Shown here one piece after another: positions 4,561 to 63,177 of a DNA stretch of 64,000 nucleotides. The notes beneath the pieces were generated by a model. It saw only the letters and a list, made by a program, of their open reading frames with translations, searched no databases and was not told the origin of the DNA. This stretch comes from Chlorokybus atmophyticus (lineage: Eukaryota; Plantae; Mesostigma and Chlorokybus algae), in NCBI GenBank assembly GCA_009103225.1, contig RHPI01001327.1, forward strand, positions 62,001-126,000, written 5' to 3'. The position numbers and the translations under genes are program-made. Position 1 is the stretch's first letter, and each line of letters opens with the position of its first letter.

Positions 4561-5127
4561 GGCATACCAACCCAAGTATTTAGTACCTGAAGTGCAGGTC
4601 AATGTAGGGCATGAACCAACTTTTACTCCTATGTTAAGGCCGCCATCCAATCCCCCGATGTATACTTATATGCAGTGAAATTGTTTTAAACCCGCAGTAT
4701 ATGAATCGCATGCTGACCGCAGCAACAGTGTAGGTGACAGTACAGGTATCAATAGTAGCGGTAGCAGTTACAACTATAATACACGAGCCACTTGTTGATA
4801 TAGTCGGTATAGGCATGACAAGAAGCTTTATTTATATAATAGCCAACTTTCTTTCTTGCCATCAGTCAATGAAGCTGCTCTCACGGAGTACCACATGCAA
4901 GTTGAGTCTATCACACATGAAACATTATGTCACATTCCGAGCGTGACAGATGTCTGCGGCAAGCTGCTGCTGTGCTTGCCAATCCATCTAGGATACAAAC
5001 CGACGTGTTGCAACAACACATGTAGTACTGCAGTTGGGCTTGTGCAGCTGGATGACACACTGAGCAAATTAGCCGTACACTCAGTTCCAATAAAAACACC
5101 TTACCATACGCCACCTAAGCCCAACAC

Positions 5128-5341
5128 ATGCGCAGCCTTGAAGAGAGATTTTTCAGACTGCGCCTCACACCACACTGCAACCACCAAGGCCAGAGTCCAT
5201 TCCACCCAAGCGCCTTTGGGCCAAGGCACAATAAATGCGCAGCCTTGAAGAGAGATTTCTCAGACTGCGCCTCACACCACACTGCAACCACCAAGGCCAG
5301 AATCCATTCCACCCAAGCGCCTTTGGGCAAGGCACAAAAAA
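5128..5341. repeat. Direct tandem duplication, two copies of about 107 bp
   Basis: ATGCGCAGCCTTGAAGAGAGATTT...GCAAGGCACA starts at 5128 and 5235 with few differences. Confidence 0.95.
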
Positions 5342-8708: not shown

Positions 8709-9974
8709 CTACTTGACGGCATCAATGAGCGTTTGAAAGCTGGTGACGAACCAATCAGCATTGGCCTTCACAGTGGGCCGCACTTGCATGCCACCATAAC
8801 CGATCACAACATCCGCAGCACCGGGTTGGCGCGCCTGCAGTGATGACACGTGAGCCTGATGTCATAGTGTGAGCACACAAGAGTGCCACACATACCAGCG
8901 CAACGCACCTGAGACTTTGGCATTGCCAGCGCAAAAAGCGAATTGTGGGCAATGGACGTCACACACGCATGTGCATGCCAGAACAAGAAATGTGCATACG
9001 CATACACATTGAATGGAACAGTTGACATGCAGAGAACTTTGTGCGTCAGATTTTCAAGAGAAGTAACGCAGCTTCTTGTCAGATGTCAATCACAACTTTA
9101 CATAGTGTCAATCGCATAGGAGCGCATGCTGCGTTGTATGCGACAAAGCGAGCGTGCATTGCACTCAGTGCCAAGCATGACCACCCACCTCAAGGTCAGT
9201 GGCGCCGTCACCGAGCATGACAACAGGCCCGCGATAAGCATTATCTCTTCGCAGCTGCGCGACGGCGCGAGCCTTGCCGCCCGCGCGTGACGTGGGTTCA
9301 GTGGGGTCAAAGCCCACATACTCCCCTTGTTCATCAAACAGCAGGCGATTCGCCCGCACCCTGCTGGTAGGGATGCCCAGCATGTCGGCGGCGGGCTCAA
9401 CCATCTCCCTGAACCCGCCGGAGACAAGCCAGACGTGGGCGCCACGGGCGTGGAGGAGGTGGACGAGGTCGGCGACGCCGGGGCTGAGGGGAGGGGGGCG
9501 GGCGGCGAGGAAGCGCTGGAGGGCTTGCCGGGAGGGGCGCATGAGGTTGAGGCGGGCGGCGAGGGCCTCGTGGAAGGGGGCGCCGCCCTCCATGGCACGC
9601 GCAGTCAGCTCGGCCACCGCCTCGCCCACGCCCAGGTGGGCGGCGAGCTCGTCTATGCCCTCGTCGATGCACACCGTGCTGTCCACGTCCATGCATACGC
9701 AGTCCGCCTCTCTCAGTGCGGCCCTCGCCGCATCCTCCCTCAGCTGCATGTCCTCAACCACACTCGCCCCTCCCATCGCTGACGCCGACGAAGAGGAGGA
9801 GGACATACTGGCTGCTGCCATCACAGACGGCGACATCCTCACCATGCATGCGGGCTGCTGCGCCGTTCTCCTCATCCTCCTCGCTGACACCCTGTTGGTG
9901 GCCTGGGAGGTCATGTCGCCCAGACCATCCACCATGCCAACGCTCCGCCCCACCGCCGCCGCCGTCGCCACCAT
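8709..9974 (-). CDS. PSP: Phosphoserine phosphatase (HAD family), probably plastidial
   Basis: Exons 9974-9189 and 8834-8709. HAD motif I DVDSTV, LVSGGF, GGKARAV, GDGATDLE|ARQPGAADVVIGYGG; stop TAG at 8711-8709. Confidence 0.93.
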
Positions 9975-9976
9975 GA

Positions 9977-11925
<1,949 letters not shown>

Positions 11926-13800: not shown

Positions 13801-16052
<2,252 letters not shown>

Positions 16053-16427: not shown

Positions 16428-20969
<4,542 letters not shown>

Positions 20970-22815: not shown

Positions 22816-25800
22816 ATGGCGGCCGACGGTGGTGAGAGGGTGCAGAAGGGGCACAGGGAGCGGCAGGCTGGTCCGAAGGCCGTCAAGAAGAAAGAAAAGA
22901 AGAGGAAGAAAGGAGGACCACCTGACCCCAACCACAAGAACCCCAAGGCGTTCACTGTCCGCTCCACAAGAGTTGCAAAACGGGTGTGTTGCCGAGCGTG
23001 CTGATGACATCTATTTTCACGCAGTTATGCTTTGTGCACACTCTGCAAACATCTTCTTTACCACTGGGTGTCGTGTTCTACGCACATGCGCACGCATGTG
23101 CGTAGAACATCACAATTGTTAACAACTTCATATCAGGTGTGTACTTACTGCATGCACTCATTTGCATGCAGTAAATACATACATACTTGGTATGCGCACA
23201 CTACAGGTAATGCCGTGCCTGAATTTTTCGAGAGGATGTTTGCTGTATACGTTGGTTCTATTGCAGTAGCTCCTGTCATGTGAAGGTCGTAGTTTTGACT
23301 GTGTGCATGGCGTATCACTGCATGTCAGCAGGCATGTACTATGACCACTTACTCGTGGCATGTGCACATGGTAAAGGTTACTCATGGGGCGGTTGTCTTC
23401 CACTGCAACAGGTGCTAAGTGATCCCCAAAAGCGAGAGATCTACGACCAATATGGGGAGGAGGGGCTCAAGGGAGGGATGCCTGGCGCTGGGCCTAGCCC
23501 TGATATGGGAGGGATGCCTGGCGCTGGTCCCAGCTTCAGGAGCAGCGGTGTTCGCTTCAGCGCGCGCAATCCTGAGGATATCTTCAGGGAGTTCTTCGGT
23601 GGCGGCAGTCCATTTGGGGACTTTGGAGGGTGAGTGGTGATGACTCTGCATCTGGCGGACTGCACGATGCTTGATGCCATAGCCACCTGCTGCTTGGACC
23701 TGTGAGCTCATCTGTCTTATCTCTGGCAGGATGGGCGGGATGTTTGGCGATGGTGGAGGGATGGGCGGCATGTTTGGGAGCAGGATGGGCGGCATGCATG
23801 ACTTTGCCGGGATGTCGCGCGCGCCAGCAGGGCCGAAGAAGCAGCCCCCAGTGGTTCAGAAGCTCATGTGNTGAGCTGTTCATCATTTTGCATGCAGACC
23901 GGTAAAACAACCCTCATTCAGTCCCTGATCAAGCATTACACAAAGCACAATTTGTCGGAGGTAAAAGGCCCGATCACTGTCGTCTCTGGTAAGTTCACAG
24001 CTAGCCCCTGCAAGTTACCTGTTTGTTGTTGCCTTTTTGCTGCCAACTGCCTGTACAGACAACTTGACTGCCAACCATGTGTTCAGGCAAGCACAGAAGG
24101 TTGCAGTTTGTAGAGGTTGGAGCCGGGCTGTGCGATATGATTGACGCTGCCAAGTATGCGGATCTTGTGCTGCTGTTAATAGATGGCGCTTTCGGCTTTG
24201 AAATGGTAAATACATGGGTGGGTTGGTGCAGTCACATTGGCGCTAATAAATGGCGCTAGTTGTTTCAGCTGTCCTGATGATGGTGTTCATATGCGCAGGA
24301 AACGTTTGAGTTTTTGAATGTGCTGCAAGTGCATGGTTTCCCCCGCGTGATGGGGGTGCTGACCCATCTGGACCACTTCAAGGATGCGAAGCGCTTGCGC
24401 AAAACAAAGAAGCGGATGAAGCAGCGGTTTTGGACTGAAATCTATGACGGGGCGAAGCTGTTCTATCTGTCTGGCTTACTGCATGGACGGTACCCGAAGC
24501 GGGAGGTACTGAATCTGGCCCGCTTCATCTCCGTATGCAAGTTCCGCCCGCTGCAATGGCGGTCCGCACACCCTTACATGCTGATGGACCGTGTGGAGGA
24601 CGTCACACCACCTGAGGAGATACGCGTCAATGCCAAAGGCGACCGCACCGTTGCGTTGTACGGGTACCTTCGCGGCGCCAACTTGAAGCCGGCCATGAAG
24701 GTGCATGTGGCTGGAGTAGGCGACTTCCCGTTGGCCTCAGTTCGGACCCTTCCTGATCCCTGCCCTCTTCCTGGTCAAGGACGCAAAAAGGGACTTGGTG
24801 ACCGGGAGCGGCTCATCTATGCGCCCATGTCAGATGTTGGAGAGATGCTCTACGACAAGGATGCCACATATGTTCAGGTCCCTGATAGGCATACACAGTT
24901 TTCAAGACCCGAGCAAGGCAAGTAGCCTCCAGCTCAGAGTGTTGTTGTATGGCTGTGCAGTACTGCGGGTTGCTGTTACTCAACCTTTTATGTTGCAGGT
25001 GGAGAAGAAGGTGAAGTTGAGGAGGGTGTGCGCATGGTTCGGGAGCTGCAGGTATGTTAAGAAATGCCATGAATTGCACGCAGGTGTTTACATGTAAGTG
25101 CGCTTACATCAGGTTTGTACTGCAGGACACACCGCACACCATCGATGAACTCCTGCAAGGGTCAGACATTTGCTTACTTTCCAACTCGCAAGCCCTCAAG
25201 GCCTCATCTCTAGGTAACGCCACACACTATGCGCACTGCATAGTTGCCAATGCACCTGTTTGGCCTGAGTCTTCGTTCCCTGCAGCTGACACTGTTGACA
25301 ATGGCTTGGATGAGATTGATGACCAAGCAGAGAGCGGGCCTGAGGAGGGCTCAGAGGAGGAGGATGGTGACGATGACGTGTCAACAAGCGGAGATGAGGC
25401 TCCTGCAGCTGCGCACAAACAGGCCGTAGTTGTGCAAGATGGTCGCGTTCGCCGGCGCGCATTGTTTGCCGATGAGGTGCGCATTGATGCAGCACAACAC
25501 GCGTCATGTGGCAGACTTTTTGAATCCTCATCGATTTCTGGGATGCTTGCAGGAGCAAGGTCGACTAAGCACCTCTGATGCAGAAGAGGATGTAGAGTAC
25601 GCGGATGACGATGCAGGTACTCTAACTTGTCACGCGCATGGCCTGTACCGCAAACAACCACACACTCATAGCCGTTTGTAGCGATATATGTGTATGTCGT
25701 GCTTCGTTTGGTTCCTGCGGTTCATGAAACTTTCGCCACAGATCTTGGGCAAGCTGCAGCATGGAAGGACAACCTGGCGGAGCGCACGAAACAGCTGTTT

Positions 25801-28089
25801 CAGAAACACGTGAGACTGGAGGAGCTGGTGTATGGTAGGCCAGGCCGGGTTGCAACTTCTACATTAGATGAAGAGCGGCCTAGTAGCAGTGAGCATGAGG
25901 ACGGTGATGGTGATGATGATGATGAGCTGTTTCGAGTCCGTCGGCCCAAGGTAAGGCATAGCAAGCTACAATGGCCGGGGTGTGTCTAGACAGCGTGTGG
26001 TTCTGGCATCATGCTTTAGACTTGTGTGTGCTTCAGACCCCGCAAGCAGAGCGGCCTTTGGAAGATGTTGATGCCTTAGATACAAGCAAAACAATCTGGA
26101 GAGAGGAGCAGTTGCGATTGTGGGACACAGAGGAGGTAATGCTTTGTAGGCTTATACCTTGCTCATTTGTACTCGGTAGTACAGTTTGCTGCTTGTGCTG
26201 CCTGTTCATCTTCATCAATGCGCTTCTTGCATGGCGGCAGGCAACAGAGCAGTTGCGCAACCGGTTTGTGACTGGTGACTGGGACGCCGCTGCGAGGCGG
26301 CAGCGAGGCGAGGGCGAACCAGCTGATGCACATTCCAACGATGCGTTGTATGGAGATTTTGAGGACTTGGAAACAGGCCAGAAGGTATGCATGCATTTTT
26401 CGCTACTGATGCATAGCCATGAGCAGAACTAACCATGTGTAACATGTCAAACGATGTGTGACTTCCGGCGGATGCAGGTGACAGCTGGTGGTGAAGCCGT
26501 TGGCGCAGAAGAGCAGGCTGGCGCCAAGGAAGATGAAGCACAAGCACGGCTGGCCAAAAAGCTACAGTTGAGACACAAGTTTGATGCCAAGCATGATGGC
26601 TCTGGCGGTGAAGATGAAGAAGCCGATTATTTCACAGAAGTAAAGGCAGATTTGGCTGCACGCGCTCAGCGCACGCGCGATGCCTTGGCAAGTCTTGATC
26701 CAGAAACTCGCACAGCGGTGAGCATTTGTGTCGCGTCATGTACGCATGCGGGACCGTTCTATTGAATTCGCGCTCACTATGTTTCACTGCAGTTGGAAGG
26801 TTACAGAGCGGGAATGTACCTGCGATTGGAACTTCGGCGCATCCCTTACGAGTTCATTGAGTACTTCGATCCATGTGTACCTGTGCTTGTTGGTGGTTTG
26901 CTAGCCAATGAAGAAGCTCGGGGCTTCGTGCGAGCAAGGCTGAAGAAGCACAGGTGGCAACGAAAGGTGCTGAAGAATCGCGACCCGCTAGTCTGTTCGG
27001 TGGGTTGGCGTCGCTTTCAAACCATCCCTGTGTATGCTCTGGAAGATCCCAATGGGCGCCTGCGCATGCTCAAGTACACGCCCGAGCACATGCATTGCTT
27101 AGCAACCTTCCATGGCCCGATCAGCCCGCAAGGTACCGGCCTGGTAGCCTTCCAGAGTGTGACAGGCTCGGCATCTGCGGGTTTCCGTGTGGCTGCTACA
27201 GGTGTGGTGCTGGAGCTGGACCACTCTGCTCCCATTGTAAAGAAGCTCAAGCTGGTCGGCTACCCGTACAAGATATTCAAGAACACTGCCTTCCTCAAGG
27301 ACATGTTCAACTCTGACCTTGAAGTGGCTCGCTTCGAGGGTGCGGCGGTGCGCACGGTTAGCGGCATCCGCGGCCAGCTGAAGAGGGCTGTGAAGGCAGG
27401 GCAAGGAAAGGAGGGTTGCGTGCGCGCCACATTTGAAGACAAGATACTCATGTCGGATGTTGTCTTCCTTCGTGCGTGGGTGCCCGTGGATGTCCCCATC
27501 TACTACAACCCGGTCACCAGCCTGCTGCAGTCCCCTGATACACCATGGCACGGCATGCGCACTGTTGGGCAACTCCGCCGCGAAAACAACATTCCTATCC
27601 CAGTGCAAAGGGACTCGCTGTACAAGCCGATTGAGCGCCACACCCGCAAGTTTAACCCTCTTAAAGTGCCCAAAACTCTGCAGGCTGCGCTGCCGTTCAA
27701 GTCCAAACCCAAGGATGCTACAGCTCGCAAGAAAAAGAGCTACGAAGCACGGCGGGCTGTTATTCTTGAGCCACATGAGAAGCGGGCATACACGCTGTTG
27801 CAGCAGCTGAACACCCTGCGCAACTACAAAGCGGAGAAGCGCAAAGAACAGCAGGCTCGTCGGCGAGGGGAGTATGAAAAGAAAAAGGCCAAGGAGGACG
27901 CCGTCCGCAATGAACATAGCAAGGCAATTCGCAAGAAAAGGTGATAACCTGGTAGTCTAATTCTTTGCCACTGCCTTTGTGACGTATGTCGTGGTTTGGT
28001 TACTTTAACCGTGTGTGTGCATGTGTAGGTACCGCATGGAGGGGTTGACAGATCTTGCTCGCCAGAAGAAGCAACGTACTTCCCAGTAA
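22816..28089 (+). CDS. BMS1: Ribosome biogenesis GTPase BMS1 (one early exon not visible)
   Basis: Exon 1 22816-22983 ([14 protein letters not shown]); exon from 23898 [19 protein letters not shown]; [27 protein letters not shown]; long exon 26792-27940 [30 protein letters not shown]; last exon 28029-28089. Confidence 0.92.
23412..23870 (+). other. Internal two-exon fragment of a class B DnaJ/Hsp40 gene inside BMS1 intron 1, cut at an N
   Basis: [21 protein letters not shown] (end of J domain), G/F region [12 protein letters not shown], intron 23630-23729, [18 protein letters not shown], then N at 23871. Confidence 0.85.
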
Positions 28090-31000
28090 TCCAAGTAGTC
28101 ATGGGAAAAGTATATGTGTGGGTGGTTGCTTCGGCAAAATGCTGTACAGTTACAGGCTGTTGTGCGTATCTCTTTGGTGCAACAATTGGTTCATGCACCA
28201 GATCCGACACGAAAAGGTTTTATATTGCTGTGTGGCGTGAGACAGAAAGGCGCATTCGTTGTGACGCATATAGTGCAAAGCGCGCATGTGTGCTATGTGT
28301 TGTGTGCCATGCTGCGGCCAGTACGGCACACACTCATATTGTCAATGCATGTGTGTAGACTAGCTGACACCATTTGGAGGGGACGATGCTGCTTGTACAG
28401 GTATCAGTTGGGATTGGAAGGTTCGAAACGCGGGTTGCAGGCAGAGAAGTTCATTGGCTGCAACAGATACAGTGTGTGACCAATGCATATGGGCGACAAG
28501 GCTGCCATACACACCTCGGGTACCCATCAAAAGCTGTACATGGGTTGTCTTGACCAGTTGTTGCAGGACATGTCTGGTGAGCGAACCTGAGCTAAACAAG
28601 GTCGGGCTAATGCTTGACAGTGCATCTGCCGGGAGATAATCAGTGCAGAATGAATGAGAGTTTCTACGCCACCTTGGTAATCAGGCTGTCAGCCGTTTAC
28701 TTGCCCCTCGTTTCCTCGTCCGCTTGAGTTTCCACGTTCTGCCACAAGTCACAATTCTGTTAGCCTTATGCCATGGGTGCGTTGCACGCTCTCCAGCAAA
28801 GTGTGGCCTGCCAAGCTTGCTGCAGACACGTACCTGGCGGATGTAGTTCTCAGGTGGTTGTGCATCTCTTCGTTGTGGCATTTTGGCTGCCTCGCAAGAG
28901 AGTTGTTTTCGTTTGCCTTGTGTGGCAAGCAGGCCGCTGCTTGTCGACTCCGAAGCTGCGTTACCATCAACCAAGGTAGTGGCCTGGGAGTGGGCTGAAT
29001 ATTTCTGCTCTGTCTCTTGCTGCTTAGCTAGTGGATGCCACTGCAATGCTGCAGTGGCATACGATGCTGCTTTCTTGGCCCCAAAGTCCCTCAAACCCTC
29101 AAGGTTGCGGATGCAGTTTGCAGCATTGGCCAGCACGCCTTTCATCGAGCTGTCTTCTGCGCACAGCAGGTATGCAGCATGTTCAGGAGCATTGGAGTTG
29201 CCTGCCTTCAGCAACTTCACTGCTGCTGCTGCTGCTCACCTACCCTCTCAGACTTGGACAAGAAGGTGCCATGGCCCAACAGACCACCTAGACAGTAGCG
29301 AGAGAGAGCGTCTCACTTGCAAGCTCAGGCTGCGTCTATCCCTCAGCACCTCCGCGCCCACAAGCCTGACGCTGCTACTGCTGCCCACGAGAGATGGAGA
29401 ACCACAGCTGGCTGTGTGGATAGCCGCCTGACTGGTTGTGATTGGCCCTCTACAGAGCGAGCGGCTACCGTTTCAGGGGCTTGTCACGTCAGTCATGGCT
29501 GGGTGATGTGACAGCTGACGCTTATTAGCCTGCCAAATGAAGCAACTGCGATGTGATGTGACTGCATGTAATCTCTGGGAACAAGACGCAATGTGAACTT
29601 GCTACCAAACAAGGACCGTGCAGCAGGGGCTGTCAACTCGTGTGGCAGACAGAGACCCACCGGTCACATCAACCATGTAGTACATGCTAGCTTGCGTATC
29701 TGGCATGCTAAGTAAGACAAGTGACATTAAAGGCCATGTCGTGCGAATGTTGCTGTCTACTATGGGACTCCCTGCGACTGTGGAAGGCGGATGCGACTAG
29801 GGCTCATGGCGGCAATGTGAAGGCGACGACAGAGCGCTGACGATGTGAAGCAGGCGGTGGCGGGCTGTGGCGTGAGGGTAAGGAGCTTGTGTAGGCGACT
29901 GTGGACAGAAAATGCAAGTGGTCATGATACACGCAACATGCATGACACATGCCTTGTTCACCAAGCTCATCATCATGCAATGCTTATCTACCACCGGGGT
30001 TTACCTATACTAGCCACACGTAACTAATGTAACTACTGCCTTCAACCCCCATCAGACATATATGCATGCATTTGCTCATTACCTGTACACAAGGTGTCAA
30101 AACACGTTAGCTAGCGGCACAGCTTCAGGCGAGGCAGCAGCAGACAGCAGACGGACTCCCCCGCCTCTCTCTTCCTCTCTCTCCGCCACCCTCCTCCTTC
30201 CTCCGCTCCCTCCTCTCCCTGTGCCCTTGCTGCAACGGCTTGCAAGGGTTGTAGTGTGAACGTCAGCAGAGCACCGTGCTCTGCTCAGGCGACCTGCCCA
30301 GAGGGCTGCACACGTGTGCAGTCAGTTAGTCTTGCAGTTCTTTGCAGCAGCCAGGAGCATGAGCAGCCGAAGGACTCCCACTCCCACTCCCCCTCTCCCG
30401 TTCTCCTTCACCCACAGCCTCGCTCCCGCCATTTACACGCAGCTCTGTATGTTGTAACCCTGGCTGAGGGCTCAGCCCCGCCCCTCCACCCCGTCCCTGT
30501 GCCCGGCCTTCGCGCCCTGCCCTGTCGGCAGCGGTGCTGTTGTACTAGCAGCTGCTGTATGTGCCGGTTAGGCGCTGGCAGTGGGGTTAAGTAGGTGGGT
30601 TGGCGTGTGAGATTCCCATGTGCGATGTGGTGTAAAGGTTGGAGAAACAGATGCAGCAACATACCCATGTACAGTTGCAGATAATACTGTTGCCATCATG
30701 GCAGAATGGCCAGACCAAGACCAGCATCAGCAAGCCCTGCCTGTCTCCGAAACAGTCTGACCAGCCTTTGGTCATACATGCCACATGGGTTGGCGCAGCT
30801 TTGGCAACATTAACGACGTTGCTACAGCTTCTTGACAATTACACAAGGCAGTACACGCATGGCTTCCTGTTGGTATACAGCACCAAGTGCGGCACATCGC
30901 ATAAGTCGCAGGAAACTCATGACAAGCAAAAATAAACTCTACGCCATACTACTTGCAACAAGTATACCTATATATGGAATAGTGAAACGGACTGCTCTAC

Positions 31001-34599: not shown

Positions 34600-37030
34600 T
34601 TCATAGATTGAGTGCGTCTGGCATAGTTAACTTGCCTTCACGGTATCACGTACTCTTGTGGCAAGTAATCTTATCGTCTTTTTGCTTTAGCAACTCAACA
34701 AACCAGTTGTCGAGTGCAAAAGCCTGCGGTGACATGCAATAATGTCTTGCGCATCATCAGCGAGTGGGTCCTCCCCACTTGCATCAGCAACCACCATTCG
34801 TTCCTCATTACAAACTGATTCACCTGCAATTGGCAACTCTTCAACACAAGCCTTACTTGGTTGTGACTCGGATTGCCTTTGCATTTGAGACCAAATTATT
34901 GGTCCCACTTTTGTGGTTGTGCTCCCCTTTCCTAGGATGCATACTTGACCGAGTCATTGTTGCCAGCAACAGAGGCGAGCGACTCAAAGAATTTGCCACA
35001 TTCACTCTTCCTGGTCTGTATACCCAAGTGAAGTTGAAACGTGATAAAAACTCAGCCCACCATGCTTGTCTCCGGAACAGGGTTGGTTGGGTCTAAAAGA
35101 AAAGAAGGGGGTTATGATATGTTACCACCGAAAACCCACCTTCCACCCTCTCTGGATAGCAACGCCACTCCTGTAGCGCATGAACTACTCCCAACAACTC
35201 TTGTTTAGTTGTGGTATAGTTTCTCTCAACTGGAGAGAACTTCTTGCTCTGGTACGCGAGAGGGTGTCCTTCCTGGAATTACACTGCGCCAGTGCCATCA
35301 AGGGATGCATGACTTCAACCTCAAAGTACTTGGTGAAGTTAGGCAGCTGTAGCACAGGTGCTGTTACCAAGGCCTCTTATATGAACTCAAAACACCTTCT
35401 CCTGCCCTTGCGTCCATCTCCACACGAATTTGTCACGCAACAAGTTGGTGAAGGGTGCTACTCGCGATGAGTAACCCAGAATGTCCTGCCGAAAATGGTT
35501 GCTCAAGCCCAAAAAGGCGCACAACTCGCGCACATTCTTAGGAGAAGGCCACTCTTTGACCTTTGCAATTTTCATGGGGTCATGGCACACGACCTTTTCC
35601 ACTCATAATGTGTCTGAAAAATTCCAGCTCAGTTATTTGACATGAAAACATATACGCAAAGAACTTGTTGGCATGCAACGTGTCCAACACCTCACGTACA
35701 TATACAGCATGAGACTCAGAGCTCTTACTGCACACCATGATATTATTCAAGTGCACAAATATTGACTTCAAGGAAGTCTCTAATCAGCTTATGGAACACC
35801 CGGTTCATAGCTTGAATTGTGGCTTGCGCATTCGGCAGCCCCAAAGGGAGTACTTTGTACTAGAAGTGGCCTACAGACGTCCTACACGCAGTCCAGGCAC
35901 GTCTTCCAGGGTAATCCGCATCGAATCCAACGAATTGTATATTGAGGCTCCGCTTAGCTAATCCAACCTATCATTAATCCTTAACAGTGGGTACCTATTT
36001 TTGATGATGAGCTTGTTCAAAGTCCTGTAATCTACGCACATGCGTAGCCTGCCGTCCTTTTCAAGTATAAACAGAACAGGTGCTCCGAAGGGAGAGCTAC
36101 TTGGCTCAATCAATCACTTCGCAAGCAATGCCTTGATTTGCTAGCGATTATACATGTGCGCATGCTCAGCTAACCTCAGCCTATACAAAAATCTAAATGG
36201 AGGTTGTGATCCCGTCACGAGAGGAATAGCATGCCGGACTTCCCTTTCAGGTGGCATCTCAGGCAGCTCAGCTCTAAACACATCAGAATACTCATGCACA
36301 AGAGCCTTTGCTGTGCCTTGCTCATTGCCAACAGTCTCACCGAGTGAAGTGGGACTCTCGTCAGCAAATGGCTTGACTAGCACCAGAAGAGGTGTAGCAC
36401 CTTTCTTCGAAGCTCTTTTCACCTGCATGGCATTTATTAGCAAGGTTAATCACATGATGCATCACTAGAGATAGTGGAGGTATCATCACATCCATGTGCT
36501 CTCGGTCACACGCCCTCTCCCTTTGCGGACATTGCACATGCTAGTGTCTGCATTTGTGCGCAGGCCATTAGCACGCTCTTAACGAGCACCAACGATGGCA
36601 TCAACATCTGGTACCTGTACTAGTACCACAAGTAACCCAAGTTGGGCGTGATAGCCTTGCACACGTAACGCTAGACGCATGGACCCCTTTACCAAAATCA
36701 TAGAGTCATCAGGCGTAGCTACGGTTTTGCTGGCTTAACACACATGGATACCTAGCCTTTGTACTAGAGCTTCACTCACAAAGTTCTCCTGAGTGTTAGT
36801 ATCAATCATTAGAGTGGCTGGCACACGTGCAACTGTTGCCTTGAACATCCACGTTAAATCGAAGTGATTTCCCCGGTGGAGAATTTGCGAGTCATACAAA
36901 ACTCGCACTGAGCATCTCAAGCCAATCTGAGCCATGTCAATCTCCTGCATCACTGCATACCCTTTGAATAGGACAACCATGATCCACTGCACTTAGGCAC
37001 AATGACACATGCACTTGTGTTATGCGTACT
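34600..37030 (-). mobile_element. Element C, pol remnant of a decayed Ty3/gypsy retrotransposon (protease, RT, RNase H, start of integrase); 3' end truncated
   Basis: LMIDTNTQENFVS (protease); [16 protein letters not shown] and KVKEWPSPKNVRELCAFLGL (RT); GVVHALQEWRCY..RRQAWWAEFLSRF (RNase H); many stops and frameshifts. Confidence 0.88.
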
Positions 37031-37035
37031 CTTGC

Positions 37036-37355
37036 TGTAAAGGGAGAATTGCCAATGCCCCCTTTAATCCTCTACCCCAACACCCACGCCAACGACCCTA
37101 CCCATGCCGCCGCCGTACTGTCGTGTCAAGAACCCCCGTTCCTTCACTCACTATCAGCCATAGCTTTGACTAGTTTGGTTGATATCAACCAATTGAGGAA
37201 TAGCGAATATCACCCGTTGGAACTCATAACTTAAATAAGACTCATATAAGGGTCTTAATTAAGCACCAATGGAGCTTGGCATATAATTGACCAATAATGG
37301 TCATATAAAATGATGTCAAGGTGAAAACCTTTTCTAAAGGGAAAAGCCCTTGACA
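37036..37355 (-). repeat. Element D 3' LTR with adjacent polypurine tract
   Basis: TGTAAAGGG...CCCTTGACA termini; C-run 37359-37366 reads GAGGGGGGGGCAA on minus, directly before the LTR. Confidence 0.92.
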
Positions 37356-40760: not shown

Positions 40761-41440
40761 CTATAGTAAGGGAATAAGATGACCATAAAATGCGGCCACA
40801 AGTGCATGGTCACTGTGCGACGGAAGCACCACCAACTTCATATAAGTAGGCATGTCGGTTATCCGCTTGAACTTAGCCACAAGGTGTCCATGTGATGTCC
40901 ATTTGAACCATGAGCCATGATAGCATGGCATGAGGACATACCCTGTGATAGCAAGATGCTGTTTTTGAAACATAGCAAACTCTGCTAAATTAGTTGCTAA
41001 CACACGGATTGACGTTCAAGGACCATGAATGGTCCGTGACGCAGGACCGGGATTTCCCCCTGCTAAATGAAATGGGTGGACCTTGCATGGTCTGTTTTTC
41101 ATCGACAGTCGGACCATTCATGGTCCGAATTTCACGTGAATGATACCATTGTCCCTTGGTACGCACCACTTAAGGTACGGCCGATTACTGTTGCGTCAGG
41201 ACCAGGTATGGTCCGGCTATCGGACCAGGGACTAAATCATATTATTACAATACTTCAATCATAACTGGTCCGGCCAGCGGACCATGGACCGAAATTTATT
41301 ATGGACCAATGTAAATATGAGTGCAAATGCAGTAAAAGTTGAGACATCTTTGCCGGCGGCACCGGCCACGCCCAACCTGCGGCGCACGAGGCCGCGGCCA
41401 GCTCCGCGGCGTTAGTGGAATGATTAGTCAAGAACACACG

Positions 41441-44141: not shown

Positions 44142-45084
44142 TAAGTCAGCTGGTTTGCACGAAAGTAACACACGCGCATCATGCACTGGTTCATCACGCC
44201 GCATTACAGGCAACATATCATGATCAATCCAAGCATGTGTAACACCATGTGTACGTAAAATAGATGTCATGTCTAAACCAATGTCTCTTGGCACAGTGGC
44301 CATGGCTAATCCCTACGGCTGCTGCTGAATCTTCTGGCCTTTGCCCTTGCCCATCTTTTGAGACGCAGAGGCCTTTAGCTCAGGGTGCAGCTGCCAACAA
44401 CGATTTGCCGTGTGACCAGGTTTCCTGCAAGAAGCACAAGTAACTTTTTGCTTATCACAGACACCGCAGCTGTATCCTTAGGATAAGTTGCTTTGGTAAA
44501 TCATGAAAATGGTCAAGACTGATGACAGCCTTGATGTACTCATCCAGATCCTTAGGCCCCCGCACAATGTTGTCCCCTCTCAGCTGCAAGCTGGTAACGA
44601 GATCCTTGCGTAATCCACTACGAAAGGAGTGCATCTGTGCAGCCGCATCGTTCGGAAGTGGTCCTTGGTTGAACTTCATCAACCAACAGGCGCCACTCGC
44701 GCGCATACACATCAGCACTCTTGTTGCCCATTCAAAGTTGGCCCAATTTCTCATCTGCTTCCACCCAAGGCGCAACACTCTGGTAGTGACTGCACATGTA
44801 GTCCAGCAGTGCTTGCATGGTACTGGCAAAGTTGCCCTTCTTATGCTGCATCTGCAACTCAATTGCTGCCAAATTGAGAACAATGTTCAACTGTTGACTG
44901 TTGAACTGTTGAACTTGTCCTCCTCTGACATGTCATTGGCTAACGCCAACCAGTTGTTGATGGACACGATCCACTTCATACTAGTCTTCTTCTCAGTGGT
45001 ATCAAACTTGAATGGCTTGACCAATGCCATCTTGGCACTGGCAGACATACTGCTTGTGGCGGGTGCAGAGCGCAATGTCGTCAC
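44142..45084 (-). pseudogene. Element D gag with zinc knuckle and start of the extra domain (disrupted)
   Basis: KPFKFD..KWIVSINNW, FRSGLRKDL (retrotransposon gag-like); CASCRKPGHTANRC knuckle at 44438-44397. Confidence 0.8.
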
Positions 45085-52268: not shown

Positions 52269-54800
52269 GTGGAGCCCACCACCATTGCGTACGGACCAGG
52301 GGGGCAACGTACCACGCGTGTGGCACGCGATGATCGCATCTTGCCCCTACCACCTTCAGAGTACCACACGCTGCCGGAACCCACACAACAGCAGATGGAG
52401 GATGAAATCCTCGCCGGCACTGCACCAGAGATGAGGGGTCGTCTCTTCGGGGTCACCTATCGGAGACCTGCAGTATTAGAGCTGGCCATTCAGTTGTTCT
52501 TGGCATTACACGCACGGTTGCAGGGCGCACCCAGTCAAACGCGGCAACCCATGCCCGCTCTGCAGATCGACTTCAAGCCCTCACCACTGGACCCACTCGG
52601 ACTCCAGCGCCACAAAATACAAGACCTCGTGGTCACCATGACGGACATCGCGCTGGGCACTGATCCCGCTCTCCGGGGGCTCACTCCAGGCAGCCGTCGA
52701 GAGCGATTTTTTGCCCTCGAACAGGCACATCAATATCAGGTGGACCAAGCTGCCCAAGTGGACGCGCGCCGACAGGCGTACGAAGCAGCACACGCCGTTA
52801 TCGTACCAACCGTAGCTCCGATAAATGTTGCCAGCGCCTCCACGACGCTGACCACAGGGTACTCCACGGCAGTCGCCATCGAACAACCAAGACAAGCAAC
52901 TGTTGCAGACCAAGCGAGGGCGTTGGCGCAACAATCGAGGGGGGTAATCGCCCCGCTGCTGCCTCCTTTGGTCGAAGACATGCCTGAGGATCAACGCGAT
53001 GCAGGGCGAGGGTACCTCACCCCGCAAGGGGACACCACACAACGAGGAGGAGCTGGTATGGTGGGGGAGCAACAACTCAGTACCGCACTCATCCGGCAAG
53101 CAGTCATGATGCACAGGCCTGAGGGCAACACATTAAGACAGATGATGGGGATGCGAGAGGGCAGCGCCGCTCGAGCCCGGCTCGTGACATGGCTCGTTGC
53201 CAATCACCCTGCTGTCCCCATGTTTGCCTTTGGCAACCGAGCATCATGGTTGGGGGCATTCGTTCGTTCGCTGCGACAAGCATACGACGAGGCTGCCACC
53301 ACAGCCCCGGACACGCTGGAGGGAGTGCAAGAGGCAATGCTGCGGTTGCCAGGGGTGGAAGCCGTACGACAACGGCGGCGCATCGCCATTGCTCATGAGC
53401 TACACGCACAGCAGACTGACCTCCAGCGCACCCTACACGCGCGCGCCATGACCGTGCTCGATGTGGGAGTGGTACAAGGAAGGTGGGATGCCTACATGGC
53501 AGGGATCTTGCGAGTCCCCACCATCACTCACGACATGCGGCGACAGCTACTACGCGCCGTATACCTGCAGCCCATGCCTCAATATCATCATTGGACCAAC
53601 ACTGACACCGAGCCCACGGCCACGTGGGAAGGGACGTTGGTCAGAGAAGCGGCTCATGCTGTCCGATGGACGTACGCCGCGGAGCAAGAGGAACGCGAGG
53701 CAGGCCCACAAACACCGGGTCCGCCGGGGTTTCCTCCACAGCCATTGGGTACACCCGCGGGCATGATTCCATCTTCGCAAAGGCAGCATCCACTTGCGCC
53801 GCCCCCACAATCGGCGCCGGAACCTCCAGCACCGAGGCCCCCCCGTGTCTACCAACCACCACGACAAGGTCGGTTCGGCAGAGGGCAAGGAGGGGGTTCT
53901 TCGGACCCAGCAGGCAGAGGAGCTCTGGCTGCCATGCGCTCAGCACCCCCAGCTGAGAGAACTAAGGCAAAGGTGCAGACAGCTCGTATGAGGAGGCTGC
54001 GCATCAACGCCAATGCTGCCATGGTGGCCAACCAAGGCAAGCACATTACTATTAACAGCCTGGCACCCAAGCGGGTGATGTTGGACACCGGAGCACAGCC
54101 TGTCATCATCGGGCGCTCCCTCGGCATAACCAGCTCCGACTTGGTGCCTTGCCCGTACGTGTTGGACACTGCCACAGGTAGCCGAGATAAGGTGATGGGA
54201 GTCACCAGGGAGGCCTTTTGCATTCGGTTGACCGGGCTGGACCTCACCCACACAACCAAGATCGTCCAGCAATATGTAGTCACCAATGCCGGCTCCTTCG
54301 ACTTTCTGCTTAGGCAGGACTTCAACTTTGCTGTGGGCATGGGCCTCTACTGCTGGACAGAGCAGGCGTGGTTTCGGCCACATTGGGATGAGGATGACGG
54401 AAAGGTGCAGGGTTTTCTGCCTCTCGAGTTGGTCTCGCGCACGCGCGCCCAGCGCAAAGTGGCTGCCGTGGCCACACGCAGCCACGCCCGCACACGGGAG
54501 TCTGCAACGGCCACATACGACGGCGCTTGGACGCAAGCCGCTACTGGTGCCACGGCCCCGTGTCGAACCATTGACTCTTCTCCCACCCAGTACAACGAGG
54601 AGCAAAAGGATGCCACCGTGGAAGTAGCATTGCAAGACCCAGCTGAACAGCGCTGGCGCGCACAGGTGGACGCACATGTCTTGCTCAGCCATCCACTGAT
54701 CACCACGCGCTTCCCCAACTACCTAAGCCACAACAAGGTGCAGGACCGCCATATGGTGGCCACCGGAGTGGTGGAGTGCCACACCTTTCGCAGACAACAG
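52269..54800 (+). CDS. Element E polyprotein segment: long unassigned region followed by the aspartic protease
   Basis: Open for 873 aa; VMLDTGAQPVIIG protease motif near 54075. Confidence 0.75.
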
Positions 54801-56230
54801 GGCATCACAGTGTTGGAGCTGTTTGGAGGCATTGGCAGCGGTCTTGCCGCGGTTCTCAACACGGGTGTGAAGGTTGTCAAATACTATTGACCCAGACCCA
54901 CACGCGCAAACGGTCCTCAAACACCACTTACGCCAACTGCACGAAAGGTATTCACGTCAACTACCCCTCTCGGCGTTGCAAGGCAGCCTTAAAGCATTGC
55001 CACAAGACATCCGGCTAATCACCGAAGATCACCTACTGTCCCTCGGCAACGTCGACCTATTAATAGCTGGGTGGGAATGCCAAGGGCACTCCAGGGCAGG
55101 CAAGGGGCAAGGCCTCGAACACCCTCGCTCAGGGCTGTTTTGGGAGCTCATGAGAATCATCACCTCCTTCAACACCACCAGATCTCCAGACCCCTGGGGT
55201 ACGTCATCGAAAATGTGCATTCAGAGGACGACAAGCGTCCGCACGTGGCCTCCAGCTACTAACAAGTTGTTGAAGGTATTACATGGGTGATGCTTGTATC
55301 CGGTTAGCTTGCCCTTCATACAGGAGTCGAGGGTCGAAGGTACCAAAAAGAAGCGCGTGGACTCCAGACTTAGCAAGACGGTCGAGTCATGACGGACTCC
55401 GGACCAGGCTACTTGGTAGAGCCTTGGGAGAAATCGCGTAGCTTTGTGAATACGTAAGCTTAGCAGGCGTGGCTTAACTTGTTGGAAAGCTCTGGTTGTG
55501 AGCTAGACAGCGTAGCTTACAGAACAGCAATCGGCTGAGTATAGCGCACGCGGTGCTTGCCCATGTAGACGTGTGTAGAGACTGGCGGGGTATAAAGCCC
55601 AGACTTGTTGCAATGAAGAAAAGAGGTCACGATGTAGCATGTGTGCGGATGCTATGGCGGCAGTAGCAGTCATGCTCTTGTGTTGATGTTGTTGGCGTGT
55701 CACTTGTACGTGTGTATGTCAACACAAGTTTGCTTCATTCTGGGGCACCCACTTAAGGTGAACGCGGCACGACATGGCTCGCGCGCACATCGTGTACGTG
55801 CCAAGTGGACAAATTTGGCCACCGTGGAGGAACTCATGACCGCAGAATACACGCGCAGCGCTCGGCCGCGCAACCTGCTGGTCGATGACATCCTTGACCC
55901 CGGCCGCAAAGCACAACATGTCCTGCGTCATGACCACAACCACTTCTACCCGTGCAATCAGCCCGGTCAGCCCCGTCGCGCACTCCCCACATTGGTGTCC
56001 TACCCGGGCTCCTACGCATTTTGAAACGGTGGTGACGGGATGGTGTTTGATGCGACCACTAACAGGCTGGAGAAACTCAACGCACGCGAACGTGAACGCG
56101 CCATGGGATTCTTCCACAACAGCATCACGGGTTCATCGCTGACAGATAGTCAGCAATGCCAGCTGCTTGGCCGCGCCATGGACCAGAACATCATGGTATG
56201 GCTGCTGGAGCTGAGCTTCGCGTTGCAGGA
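54800..56230 (+). pseudogene. Element E Dnmt3-like C5 cytosine methyltransferase domain, split by a solo LTR
   Basis: Motif I VLELFGGIGSG (about 54810); IV DLLIAGWECQGHS (Cys 55078-55080); VI YVIENV (55209); VIII GSRAHRVRAKWTNL (about 55790); IX ERERAMGF (about 56090); X QLLGRAMDQNIM (about 56165). Confidence 0.9.
55268..55724. mobile_element. Solo LTR (457 bp) inserted in the methyltransferase domain
   Basis: TGTTGA...TCAACA termini; TSD CAAGT at 55263-55267 and 55725-55729; removing it joins motif VI to motif VIII in frame, apart from one TAA. Confidence 0.9.
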
Positions 56231-56439
56231 CCGCCACGTGTCCTTCGAAGATCTCGAACACTTGGCTGGGGGGTGGGCTGATCGCGTAGCCGACACCAAG
56301 GCAGCTCACACAGCCCTCGAGGTGGTCCACATGGAGGAGCAAGCAGCAGTGACAGTGGAGGACATTCCCGTGGTTGCCAATGCAACCTCCTGGGACCATG
56401 CCATTGGCCCGTTGGCCACAGAAGACACTGGAGAGAAGC

Positions 56440-57830
56440 TGGAGGCTCTCCTCACCAAATGGAGGAGCCAATTCAGCTTCAATGTGAAGGAATTGGGTAC
56501 ATGTTCAGTGTACCAGATGGACATCGAGCTGGTGGACACTGAGCCGGTGTTCCGGCGGCAATACAGGCTCTCCAAGTTGGAAGAGGACTTGGTGGAACAG
56601 AGATGTAAGGCGCTGCTTGATGCAGGCCTTATCGAAGAGTCCACATCGAACTTCGCAGCAGCAACCGTCATGCCACTGAAGAAGGATTTAGCAGGCAGTT
56701 GGACAGAGCGACGCATGTGTGGCGACTATCGCCCCCTCAACAACAAGACCAAGCAAGACAGGTACCCCATGCCCACAGCAGAGGGTATCTTTGATGATGT
56801 GGGAAACTGCACAGTCTTCAGCATCCTGGACATGCGTCAATGGTACAACCAAATCGCCATCAAGGACGAGGACAAGCACAAGACCTCCTTCTGAGGCAAT
56901 CGACAGTTGTACCAATTGAAGGTAATGCCGTTCGGGCTGAAGAATGCCCCCGCCAAGTTCAACGCGTCATGGACAAGGCCTTGAAGGGGCTGGACTGCGC
57001 GCGGTGCTACATCGATAACATCTTCATTTTCAGCCGCAGCAACGAGGAGCATCTTCAGCACATTGAAGCGGTGCTGGAACGACTCAAGGGAGTGGGGATG
57101 ACCGTACACCCCGTCAAGTGTACCTTCTTCACCCACAAGGTGCCGTACTTAGGGCACATGATTGTGCCCCATGGTGTGTATGTGCAGCAGGCAAAAGTAG
57201 AGGCTCTGGCAGCTATCCACGCCCCGACAGACCTCACACGTCTGCGCGCTTTCTTGGGACTTGCCAACTACTATCGCCGGTTCGTGAAGGACTTCGCGAA
57301 GATCGCAAGGCCCCTCAACGAGCTACTGAAGAAGGAGGTGGAGTTCGCATGGAAGGAGCCGCAACAGCAGGCCTTCGAGGAGCTGAAGAGCAGGCTCACC
57401 ACCGCTCCCATCCTTCAACGTCCGGACTACGCCAAGCCTTTCATCCTTCACACCGATTGGAGCAAGCTGGGGATGGGAGCGGTGCTGGTGCAGCACGATG
57501 AGAACAAGAAGGAGCGGGTGGTTTCATACGCCAGCCGAAGCAACAACAGCGTCGGGGCCAACTACAGCAGCTACGAAGGGGAGTGCCTCGCTGCAGTGTG
57601 GGCCATCTCCTTCTTCCGACCTTTCCTTTTTGGTCGGCGGTTCCAACTGATCACCGATCATCAGCCCCTCAAGTGGCTGATGACCAACCAACATCTGACA
57701 GGGAAACTTGCTCGATGGGCCCTGCTGTTGCAGGAATACGACTTTAAGATCGACCACCGCGCCGGCCTCACCAACCAAGACGCCGATAGCCTCAGTCGCA
57801 ACCCTCACCTCAGCACCAACGACGCAACTG
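56440..57830 (+). pseudogene. Element E reverse transcriptase and RNase H
   Basis: RMCGDYRPLN, ILDMRQWYNQI, MPFGLKNAP, YIDN (YxDD mutated), FILHTDWSKLGMGAVL, YEGECLAAVWAI, ITDHQPL; stop at 56892. Confidence 0.93.
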
Positions 57831-58119
57831 GAGCTCGGCATGAGCTCGTGCGTGCAGCAACAGCCCCCACCTTGGCAGCCATGTTTGCTGCTGCCGCGTT
57901 GCGCTCAAGGCGCAAGACCAACACCACGGCCTCAGCAGTGGCAGAGGAAATTCCTGCCTTTGAGCCTACCGGCCCTGCGGCAACCACACCCTTGAGAGAC
58001 GCCACGCAGCCGACATTGACGTCGATAACACAGAGCTGGCGCCCACTGACATCAGGCAGGACATATGGCAGGACAAGCCATCACTCTCCTTTCTTCAAAG
58101 TGGCCAGCTTCCCTCCAGC

Positions 58120-59527
58120 ATGAGCGCCCGAGAGAAGAACCGAGTCAACCAACGCACCCGTCACTATCGATGGGCAGGTGACAAGCTGTATCGCCGCTTC
58201 CACGACGAGGACAAGGAAGTGCCGACAACGGTCACGCGCGAGGGCATCATCACTTCCCTCCACACTGAGCTTGGGCACTTCAGTGTCAAGCGTACAGTCA
58301 GCCTAGTGAGGGCACAATATTGGTGGTATGGGTTAACAAAACAGGTGCAGGGGTTCGTCAGCCATTGCCATCAGTGTGACATGGTGCGCGCCAGCCTCAA
58401 CACGCGTAGCGCTACCTTGCACCCACTCCCCATCTCCGGTCTTTTTTACCGATGGGGGCTCGACATCTTGGGGGACTTGGCACCCTCAGCGCGTGGCAAC
58501 CGTTACATCCTGGTGGTGGATGATCGAGCACTTCTCCAAATGGGTGGAGCTGGTACCGTTACCCGACAAGAGCAGCAGGGGGGTATCTCAAGCCTTCCTC
58601 TCTCACGTTCTCAGCCGATTTGGCAGCTGTGCCAAGGTCATCACTGACCAAGATACTGAGTTCAGAGGGGAATTCGACACCCTCTTGGACAAATGTTACA
58701 TCGACCACCGCCGTACCTCGCGTGATCACCCTCAAGCCGACGGCCTCGTCGAGCGTACAGTACAGACCATCAAGAAGGCACTCCGCAAGTACGTGCTGGA
58801 GTACGACAAGAACACTTGGGATGACCACCTCCCGTGGGTGGCCCTCGGATATCGATTGTCAAACCAGGCGGCTCTGCGGGAGTACAGCCCGTACTACTTG
58901 CTGTTCGGGCGACCACCATTGCTCCCCTTCCGTGCGCAGCAGGAGGTGGATCGCGTCGTGAACAACCTCGACGACCCTGACTGGATGCACCACAACATCA
59001 CCACGCGCGCCGCGCTTTTCAAGCGTACCGTCCCCATGGTCTTCAACAACCTGCGCATCGCGCAGCATCGTGACACGCTGCGCTACGAGCGCGTACGCAG
59101 CGGCTACTACAAGGAGCGCCAACGGCGGTTCCAAGCGGGGGACTTTGCCTATCGCATGGCAGCCACCAAAGACACGCTTGACACCTCCGTAGGTTGCACC
59201 GTCCACAAGGTACTCAAAGTGTACCCCACAGGGGTGCTGGACCTCCTTGGTCAAAACGGAGAGAGGTTGAAGGACAACATGGTGAACTGTGCGCCATGTC
59301 ACCTTCCTTACGTAGCCGGCTTCGGGCGTATCCAGCACCCTCGTCCCGCGCGCAGCACACGCTGTGAACGCTGCGGCAGCGCCGGCGACGACGCACTCAT
59401 GATGCTCTGCGATGGCTGCAACAAGGGCCTGCATTGCTACTGCCTGGAGCCACCTTTGGACGCGATACCTATGGAGGAGCATTGGTGCGACGATTGCCGT
59501 ACCAACGGCCCTCCTCACTTGCGCTAG
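58120..59527 (+). pseudogene. Element E DDE integrase with a C-terminal PHD finger
   Basis: HTELGHF..CHQC zinc domain; WGLDILG, TDQDTEF, DGLVERT core; PHD CERC..MMLCDGCNKGLHCYCLEPPL..WCDDC at about 59360-59500. Confidence 0.93.
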
Positions 59528-60704: not shown

Positions 60705-61051
60705 GCTCCGATACCAAATGTGAAGGGAGAAATGTTAACTCCCCCTTTAATCCTCTACCCCAACACCCACGCCAACGACCCTACCCATGCCGCCGCCGTG
60801 ACTGTCGTGTTAAGAACCCCCGTTCCCTCACTGACTATCAGACATAGCTTTTACCAGTTTGGTTGATATCAATCGATTAGGGTAAGAATCGCGGATATCA
60901 CCTGTTGGGACTCGTGACTCAACTAACAATCATATAAGGGTCTTAATTAAGCATGGAGCGAGGAACCAATGGAGCTTGGCATATAACTGATCAATTAAGG
61001 TCATATAAAATGTCAAAGTGAAAACCTTCTTTAAGGGAAAAGCCCTTGACA
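60705..61051 (-). repeat. Element D 5' LTR plus initiator-Met-type primer binding site
   Basis: LTR 60719-61051 is homologous to 37036-37355; TGGTATCGGAGC on minus at 60716-60705, 2 nt from the LTR end. Confidence 0.92.
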
Positions 61052-61056
61052 CTTGC

Positions 61057-63177
61057 TCTTGCACTATATATAGTGCTTAAGCATCGTTGACAACTTGTTA
61101 AAAGCACATTGCGCAGCACATGCTTGCCCACAGTCATGTAACAGCAAGTTGGAATCAACAACAGGCACACCTATATCATTGTCCCATACAGCAACATCAC
61201 ATGTGCGCATGGAAGGGTGTATATTCAATATACAAGTAAGTTACCAAAAAAGTTTAACACAATTGGGGTAGCTGGCAGGGCCTTGCTGCTAAGAAAGCAG
61301 CTCTCCACCCCGTCATCCTATGCAATGGGCTTGTCTTTGGCCGGGTTGGGGCAGGTGACCACTCGATGGCCCTCCTCGCACTTAAGGCACACTCCGGCCT
61401 TAAAGCGGGCACCCTTTAGCTCTAGCTGACCTCTTGAAGGATACTAATGCGCTTCTTATTGGCAGGCTGGAAAGGTTGCTTACCCTTGTTGTGTGGGCGA
61501 CAGTGCTTGCCATTATTGCTTTTGCCATAGCCATTGCCGCCAGCAATTGTGGTGGTGGACGATGAGGGCTGGGAGCTATTCACAAGAGTCAGCTTCTTGG
61601 CCTAGTCGATCATGCGCTAGCTATTGTTATGCTGCATAGCCGTGGGCTTTGTCAAATTGTAGTCAGCATGCGTAAAGGATTCACGGCCTTCCTTGAAGGC
61701 CAATTGCTTCTGCATATCTTTTAGCAGAGCAGCTCAGTACTTGTCCATCTTCTGCGCATTAGAGAGCGGCATGTCGACCTCGGCACACATTGACTCGCAG
61801 AAATAAGTAAAGTCCTCCACTTACTACCCGGGCTTTACCTTCAAGCACCTGAGCTTGTCACGTGCTTTTTGCGATGGGTTCACACCCCCATAAGCCTGCA
61901 ACATCGTTGCCAGGCTCGTGACATCGTTGCCAGCCTCTAGGCGTGGAGAAGCCCCTTCCCACATGCGTGCAGCATTGCCCCGCAAGTAGGGTGCAACAGT
62001 GCAGTTACCTTGGCCTCGTGCTTAGGCATAATGCCAGCAGCACTTAACACACGCTTGCATCTAAATAACCAGTCACGCACAGCAACACCACGATCCTTGC
62101 CTTTCCCCTCATGAGCGCCTAATAAGAACTCAAGGCGTGGCATCATCTTGTAAGCGCGTGCAGCTGACATCTTAGCCAGCTGCTGCTCATGCTGTTCCTT
62201 CATGGATGTGTTGGCAGCCAACATGGCCTGCACCTGGATCTGGAGCTCAACTACTTGAGCTGCTAGCAGGTTGGCAGCATTTGCATCAGCCAAATTCATT
62301 GTAAAACTTTCAGTTGTGCACAAGCACGTAATGAGTGTGAATGCAACTGTCACACCCTCTCAACACCGCTCAAAGTGTATGCAACAATGCACAACGTGAA
62401 TGCCAGAGGCAGCGTTGGTTATAGCCCATACCTGATATGCAAGTGTGCCCGCAGCTGGAACAATCAACTAGCATGCAATCTCAGCCACACTGCTATAAAG
62501 CATCTGCAAGCAAAGAATGCAATGCATGTGCCAGCAACATATGTGCAAGCTGATGCACAAGCATGTAAGGCTTGGAAAAATATCACCGATACCAATGTCA
62601 CGTTGACCTCTTGGTACCTGCTGAGAGGGTTACAAACTTCTGCACAAGCATCTGAACTTTACTACACACCATGCGACCAGCAACAACCCACAAGGGAGTT
62701 GATTGGGAGAGCACCCTCCAATAGCTTTAGTCAGGCACCCCACACACAAGTAGCTGTGCAAGGCCAGTAATTGATTGCCACCACAAAGTGGTAGTCACGC
62801 GTTTATACTACCTGCTTCTCTCCAATCTGGCATAAAGGATGTGAGGTGGCGAGGCCAACAAGACCTCGCCACCTATGCGCTGAGCTGTTAGTACAGGCTG
62901 ACTGTGTCCACCCTTAGACACTTCAACATAGGCAGCACTCTTGCTGCCGTGGCGACTATGTGCTTAACACTGACCAGTCCAGTACTTACTAGTAAACAAT
63001 GACATGGGTAGCTGCTATGTTCGTATGCATTAAGTACATAACCACTGACTTCGTGAGCACATATGCCAGGTGCTACACACACCATGACTATATGGAATCC
63101 TCACTTGGTCCTTCTTACCACATAAATTGGGAACCGAGAGTGTCATAAGTGTTCTGTCCTGTCCTTTGAATGTGACA
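61057..63177 (-). mobile_element. Element C 5' half: gag, PBS and putative 5' LTR
   Basis: gag VRDWLFRCKR..; knuckle CLKCEEGHRVVTC at about 61389-61351; PBS TGGTATCGGTG on minus at 62594-62584; LTR 62596-63177 bounded by TGTCAC...GTGACA; frame continues across element D into 37030. Confidence 0.75.

Follow-up and report, generated by a model that had tools for sequence, protein, structure and literature searches.

The window, i.e. the whole stretch of 64,000 nucleotides analysed here, very probably contains the remains of an old Ty3/Gypsy retrotransposon (element C), now dead, that belongs to the chromovirus neighbourhood and whose Pol once opened with a small N6-adenine methyltransferase domain of the Dam-like (PF05869) type, placed immediately before the protease. 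The copy of this domain in element C is a pseudogene without the Asn-Pro-Pro (NPP) triplet, and is therefore not an enzyme; it is 'methyltransferase-derived' and has no function now. A decayed N6-adenine methyltransferase-like module in a Ty3/gypsy element had been proposed in a preliminary description of this DNA, and the proposal is supported by a profile search of the window, by the PF05869 matches of the relatives and by the fold modelled for one relative.

Layout of element C and the insertion of element D

Element C lies on the minus strand, and its parts follow one another in the order of zinc knuckle (61389-61351), Dam-like remnant (61138-61052 and 37030-36953), protease (about 36880-36735), and reverse transcriptase (RT) and RNase H (36446-34844). 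The Dam-like remnant is therefore inside the element and collinear with the Ty3/Gypsy pol domains. The CCHC knuckle of gag (C-x2-C-x4-H-x4-C; 61351-61389) and the gag stop (TAG 61320-61318) may be read directly. The gag stop is overlapped by a tentative Pol start and Dam-like N-terminus (61257-61322), which shares the frame of the protease and, compared by eye, reads 'HRM...RAAF' against the 'DRM..RAEF' of the relatives; its match to the profile described below is not significant. The eroded N-terminal half of the domain follows at 61139-61228, with about 12 residues missing and with a pattern that fits the relatives but is not significant alone. The core of the remnant (61052-61138) corresponds to profile positions 50/55-83, and the continuation (36953-37030; 'HNTSACVIVPK..W....GMQ', then TGA 36952-36950) to positions 83-110. 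About 25 profile positions are absent between GMQ and 'GLRCSVRVLYDSQ' (36882-36929, protease frame), the tentative C-terminal end of the domain, which is comparable to the 'G.PWPV.VYYDPP' of the relatives (profile 135/137-150, not significant alone).

The start of the retropepsin (36735-36880) is indicated by weak Pfam matches to gag-asp_proteas and Asp_protease_2 and by collinear tblastn matches to the protease of the relatives; its active site reads D-T-N (36803-36795), not D-S/T-G. RT and RNase H (34844-36446) are riddled with stops and frame changes, and 3' of the RNase H neither integrase nor chromodomain is left. The hallmark of chromoviruses, a chromodomain at the C-terminus of the integrase, is thus missing from element C, but is present in its closest pol relatives and in element D. 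A possible LTR match of element C (49 bp, 82%; 63018-62970 versus 34589-34541) is too weak to set the ends of the element.

Element C is interrupted by a nested chromovirus, element D (37036-61051, minus strand), which bears nested insertions of its own and is delimited by LTRs and a 5-bp target duplication. On the minus strand, element C stops at 61052, the first LTR of element D starts at 61051 (TGTCAAGG...), the matching second one finishes at 37036 (...CTTTACA), and element C resumes at 37030; the duplicated target site, GCAAG, is at 61056-61052 and 37035-37031. This 24-kb insertion splits the Dam-like domain of element C at profile position 83. The LTRs of element D (37036-37355 and 60719-61051) are only 84% identical over 337 nt, so that element D is already old, and element C, into which it was inserted, is older.

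Element D has its own gag, knuckle, protease, RT, RNase H, integrase and chromodomain. The similarity between the two elements in tblastx and blastn extends only from the C-terminal half of the protease to the RNase H, and the gag-protease interval of element C shows no tblastx similarity to element D. The interval between the knuckle (about 44450) and the protease (about 40720) of element D, with its two stretches at 44150-44450 and 40842-40952 (minus strand), is broken by another insertion. The pre-protease stretch at 40952-40842 ('..AITGYVLMPCYHGSW..') is in the right place for a Dam-like domain, and scores 1.6 bits against the profile, which does not confirm such a domain in element D.

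The cluster of nested retrotransposons begins at about 34500. It also includes, inside element D, a third Ty3/Gypsy element on the plus strand (56040-59524), with RT and RNase H at 56840-58120 and an integrase ORF (58376-59524) that ends in a PHD finger (PF00628, E 2.4e-7). An upstream ORF of 873 amino acids (52269-54887) matches no Pfam family, and no cytosine methyltransferase domain was seen in the scanned ORFs. The left part of the window (5800-28000) consists of ordinary host genes, among them those for a HAD hydrolase (9168-10034, minus), a class-I Tyr/Trp tRNA synthetase (9995-10708, plus), an FtsH protease (13804-16052, minus), an alanyl-tRNA synthetase (17122-18009, plus) and a Tsr1/BMS1 ribosome-biogenesis GTPase (24314-27941, plus). 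A 107-nt unit is present in two tandem copies (93% identical) at 5114-5327. Just beyond the 3' end of the Tsr1/BMS1-like gene, with no retroelement domains detected beside it, lies the third-best match to the Dam-like profile (28225-28332, minus; profile 93-129, E 0.07 among pieces, 'CVPYWPQHG..HIAHMRALH'), which could be a chance match or a very old fragment.

The Dam-like domain in the window and in natural relatives

Relatives were collected by an exhaustive HMMER search with the intact integrase ORF of element D, which returned 150 sequences, these being ORFs from metagenome assemblies. The domain that precedes the protease in 17 natural chromovirus relatives was aligned and made into a profile of 158 positions, without any sequence of the window; the natural relatives, rather than a consensus of the family of element C, thus served as its basis. 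The joined read-through of element C was scored in scripts with X at each break, and the Pfam and PDB searches covered its separate pieces.

In tblastn, the relatives give weak but collinear matches to the window on both sides of the junction. P0119 aligns with 61132-61052 through its residues 106-132, and with 37033-36953 through its residues 132-160; P0123 (229-255, at 48% identity) and P0085 (148-174) match 37036/33-36956/53. Among 2928 stop-to-stop pieces in six frames, the best match to the profile is 37033-36953 (profile 83-110, E 0.0015), and 61141-61070 (profile 54-77) ranks fourth. When stops are read as X, 61138-61052 (profile 55-83) and 37033-36944 (profile 83-113) become the two best matches in the window; they are collinear, and the point at which they meet, position 83 of the profile, is the junction set by the target-site duplication. 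Joined in a single frame, with the stop replaced by X, the sequence reaches 40.6-41.6 bits (E 3.3e-11 to 1.6e-11, Z=2928); a switch of eight codons to the adjacent frame, with X at the breaks, raises this to 49.6 bits (E 5e-14, Z=2928), and the highest score among 2000 shuffles with the same profile is 8.3 bits. The firmly recognisable part of the domain in element C spans profile positions of about 50-110, while its N-terminal half and C-terminal end are below statistical detection. The two flanking stretches, 61138-61052 and 37030-36953, represent the recognisable middle of the domain: the catalytic loop, the helix that comes after it (..HY..CK.K) and then a strand (TSA..V.PKW).

The best pairwise match of the stretch in element C is to residues 197-255 of P0123 (blastp, 39% identity over 59 residues). 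The stop-free pieces of element C itself match no Pfam family in hmmscan at E<=10, and no PDB sequence in phmmer. The link to Dam is, therefore, a transitive one, by way of relatives whose identity to the stretch is only about 39%.

In the relatives, a Gag ORF is followed by a Pol ORF with the order Dam-like domain, protease, RT, RNase H, integrase and chromodomain. The Pol ORF opens with the Dam-like domain, and no CCHC knuckle is found upstream in the same ORF; gag is therefore separately encoded, which fits element C, where gag stops at 61320. The domain precedes the protease in 20 of the 44 relatives that are long enough to show the region, and the pol of element C is most similar to that of P0076, P0131 and P0054, all of which bear it. 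With the Pfam Dam model (cut-off 28.1 bits), P0123 scores 33.5 bits (residues 161-238, with the protease from 325), and P0085 (26.4 bits), P0118 (22 bits) and P0014 (16.2 bits) score below the cut-off; in all of these the domain sits directly ahead of the protease.

The conserved layout of the relatives' domain begins with DRM..EF..LQ, FT-x-DA....G-x-N and SFL..D..G..VW-x-NPP-F/Y and continues with ....HY..CK.K.P..TSA..VLPKW, GM.L..EYP.G..LF and WPV.VYYDPP. The motif layout given in the preliminary description for phage Dam-family and DIRS methyltransferases is essentially the same. Three checks named there, a search for NPPF/NPPY, a comparison with PF05869 and a search for a Rossmann methyltransferase fold, also turned out in its favour: the motif is present in natural relatives that are alignable to the stretch in element C, some close ones keeping V-W-I-N-P-P-F/Y exactly, the domain of P0123 scores above the PF05869 cut-off, and a class-I SAM fold is seen in the model of P0159.

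This AlphaFold2 model, built on the alignment for P0159 (a relative with an NAPF motif), has a pLDDT of about 80-95 over residues 167-320. Foldseek with the model finds the N6-adenosine methyltransferase PCIF1/CAPAM (E 2e-5). A comparison with all representatives by VIA-align gives Z scores of 11.3 for PCIF1 (135 residues aligned, rmsd 2.9), 8.7 for both T4 Dam and E. coli Dam, and 8.2 for TaqI, together with matches to many further class-I SAM methyltransferases. As modelled, the domain of this one relative has the class-I SAM methyltransferase fold and is nearest to N6-adenine enzymes.

Decay of the copy and alternative explanations

The ORF at 61228-61067 (minus strand) ends at TAG 61066-61064, and the same frame runs on as CKSK, followed by STHNTSACVIVPKCSGSWLSYSKGMQ, to TGA 36952-36950. 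The frame of this ORF is neither that of the knuckle nor that of the protease of element C, but the third one. The preliminary description had joined the two flanks of element D at the coordinates given above, which the LTR ends and the GCAAG duplication bear out, and the peptide printed there is true to the sequence, with the eight codons of 'KHVLRNVxF' (61128-61105) taken from the adjacent frame. This switch is justified, as it takes the match to the profile from 41.6 bits up to 49.6 bits. Frame changes are located near 61129 and at 61104-61102, and there are several (at least four) in all across the Dam-like stretch.

At the catalytic loop (61119-61100), element C reads V-L-R-N-V-x-F, compared with V-W-x-N-P-P-F/Y in the relatives. 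The Asn and the aromatic residue are kept, the first Pro is replaced by Val, and the second falls at the frame break, so that the motif is N-V-x-F (61110-61100) rather than Asn-Pro-Pro-aromatic. No [DNS]PP[FYW] motif was found in any frame of the gag-protease interval or of element C, and no SAM motif I in the gag-protease interval of element C. The N-terminal half of the domain (profile 1-49; 61215-61139) is undetectable with the profile, although its patterns (T-x-D-x-A...D-x-G and DS-x-L...D-x-G) fit the FT-x-DA...G-x-N and SFL..D..G of the relatives. In place of the uninterrupted ORF with SAM-binding and catalytic residues of an active methyltransferase, element C thus has two stops (61066-61064 and 36952-36950), frame changes, deletions and the 24-kb insertion.

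The interval was initially taken for a decayed linker or a chance ORF, a reading that was ruled out by the tblastn, Pfam and profile results with the relatives. If the resemblance were due to chance, the interval would be an ordinary decayed gag-protease linker and its 54-codon ORF a random open frame, as the third reading frame, the absence of NPP and SAM motifs, the empty Pfam and PDB searches of the pieces and the lack of tblastx similarity to element D in the interval might suggest. However, an independent profile would then have picked, as its two best matches in the window with stops read as X, precisely the two flanks of the insertion, abutting at a single position, and the joined E values of 1.6e-11 to 5e-14 would have to arise where shuffles reach at most 8.3 bits. 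Chance is thus almost certainly not the explanation. DIRS elements are the classical carriers of Dam-like domains, and the remnant might also be a piece of such an element, or of another with a Dam domain, that was inserted between the gag and protease of element C. This is very unlikely, as the order of knuckle, gag stop, Dam-like domain, protease, RT and RNase H is that of the single Pol ORF of the relatives, the two tentative ends of the domain share the frame of the protease, and neither a tyrosine recombinase nor an extra boundary is seen.

A different question is whether the module, although real, was ever catalytic. It might be a structural or nucleic-acid-binding domain of methyltransferase ancestry that selection in this chromovirus lineage retained for a use other than methylation, and the methyltransferase of element C would then never have been active. 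Among the aligned relatives with intact ORFs, about half show a non-canonical catalytic motif (NAPF, NFPF, CPPP, QPPA, HPPV, EPPV or DPPP), as found in the intact-looking Pol ORFs of P0018, P0028, P0040, P0007, P0112, P0113, P0118 and P0119, which suggests, as far as the sequences go, that the domain can be kept without the Asn-Pro-Pro triplet. Such motifs, on the other hand, may come from decaying copies among the metagenome ORFs, and in other close relatives V-W-I-N-P-P-F/Y is unchanged. In comparison with bacterial Dam the eukaryotic domain is truncated, without CD-1 and TR-1, and no 6mA was detected in E. coli assays of the domain, but higher 6mA was reported for DAM-LTR retrotransposon copies in ichthyosporeans (bioRxiv 10.64898/2026.05.21.726589). 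Given the several intact relatives without NPP and the negative E. coli assays, the ancestral domain in the lineage of element C may not have been an active enzyme, and in part of the lineage the role of the domain may be a non-catalytic one; as an account of element C, the non-catalytic reading is nevertheless considered unlikely. For the preferred reading, a once-encoded Dam-like methyltransferase domain, the homology, the position, the lesions and the fold of a relative are observed, and beyond them an ancestral enzymatic role may be inferred.

Comparison with known systems

Structurally, the relatives' domain comes closest to PCIF1/CAPAM (PDB 6irw, 6irx), a cap-specific N6-adenine enzyme of the NPPF type. 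PCIF1 acts on RNA caps and has additional helical domains, and at only 16% identity the likeness is at the level of the fold only. With Pfam Dam (PF05869), the family of phage-type DNA N-6-adenine methyltransferases, the relatives' domain matches positions of about 19-91 of 169, including the catalytic loop, whereas the pieces of element C itself have no match at E<=10.

The DIRS1-group retrotransposons carry a methyltransferase from the same Dam-like domain family. The DIRS elements, however, combine this domain with a tyrosine recombinase, and have neither an aspartic protease nor a DDE integrase. In element C it is located between gag and retropepsin in the Ty3/Gypsy gene order, with the retropepsin and the other Ty3/Gypsy domains following it. 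LTR elements are inferred to have captured the Dam domain from DIRS elements (bioRxiv 10.64898/2026.05.21.726589).

The preliminary description stated that such a domain is not part of the textbook Ty3/Gypsy architecture, but the architecture is by now on record, because DAM-LTR retrotransposons, including a 'Chlorophyta DAM-chromovirus-like clade', were defined by Fernandez-Moreno et al. in May 2026 (bioRxiv 10.64898/2026.05.21.726589). In the collection of papers that was searched, no further one on Dam-bearing LTR elements was found. Five DAM-LTR lineages are distinguished, and in the proposed model the domain in living elements puts 6mA on cDNA or new insertions, recruiting or mimicking AMT1-dependent permissive chromatin (bioRxiv 10.64898/2026.05.21.726589). 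The present finding bears on this proposed link to host 6mA chromatin, while the copy in element C alone is a non-functional fossil.

DAM-LTRs were reported absent from Streptophyta, in a screen that used getORF and the Pfam DAM model at E<=1e-5 (bioRxiv 10.64898/2026.05.21.726589). At that threshold the relatives are recovered and the stop-free pieces of element C are not, and, as with the missing NPP motif, this is because the copy is decayed. With a lineage-specific profile, eroded copies can thus be recovered that such a screen would miss. Should the host be a streptophyte, DAM-LTRs would have a wider host range than known so far, and it is nearly as likely as not that Dam-bearing chromoviruses were once present in the plant lineage and survive only as old wrecks not seen by an ORF and Pfam screen. 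Such wrecks would agree with the view that the elements disappear when AMT1 and 6mA are lost from the host, and would open this view to testing.

Element C, which may be a member of the chromovirus-like clade or may stem from a separate capture, resembles the clade in being Ty3/Gypsy, in its chromovirus neighbourhood and in the short, eukaryotic-type Dam domain in Pol. It differs in that its copy of the domain is pseudogenic (no NPP, stops, frame changes, deletions and the split) and in that integrase and chromodomain are gone. By architecture and homology, the closest known kind for element C is the DAM-LTR, and specifically its chromovirus-like clade.
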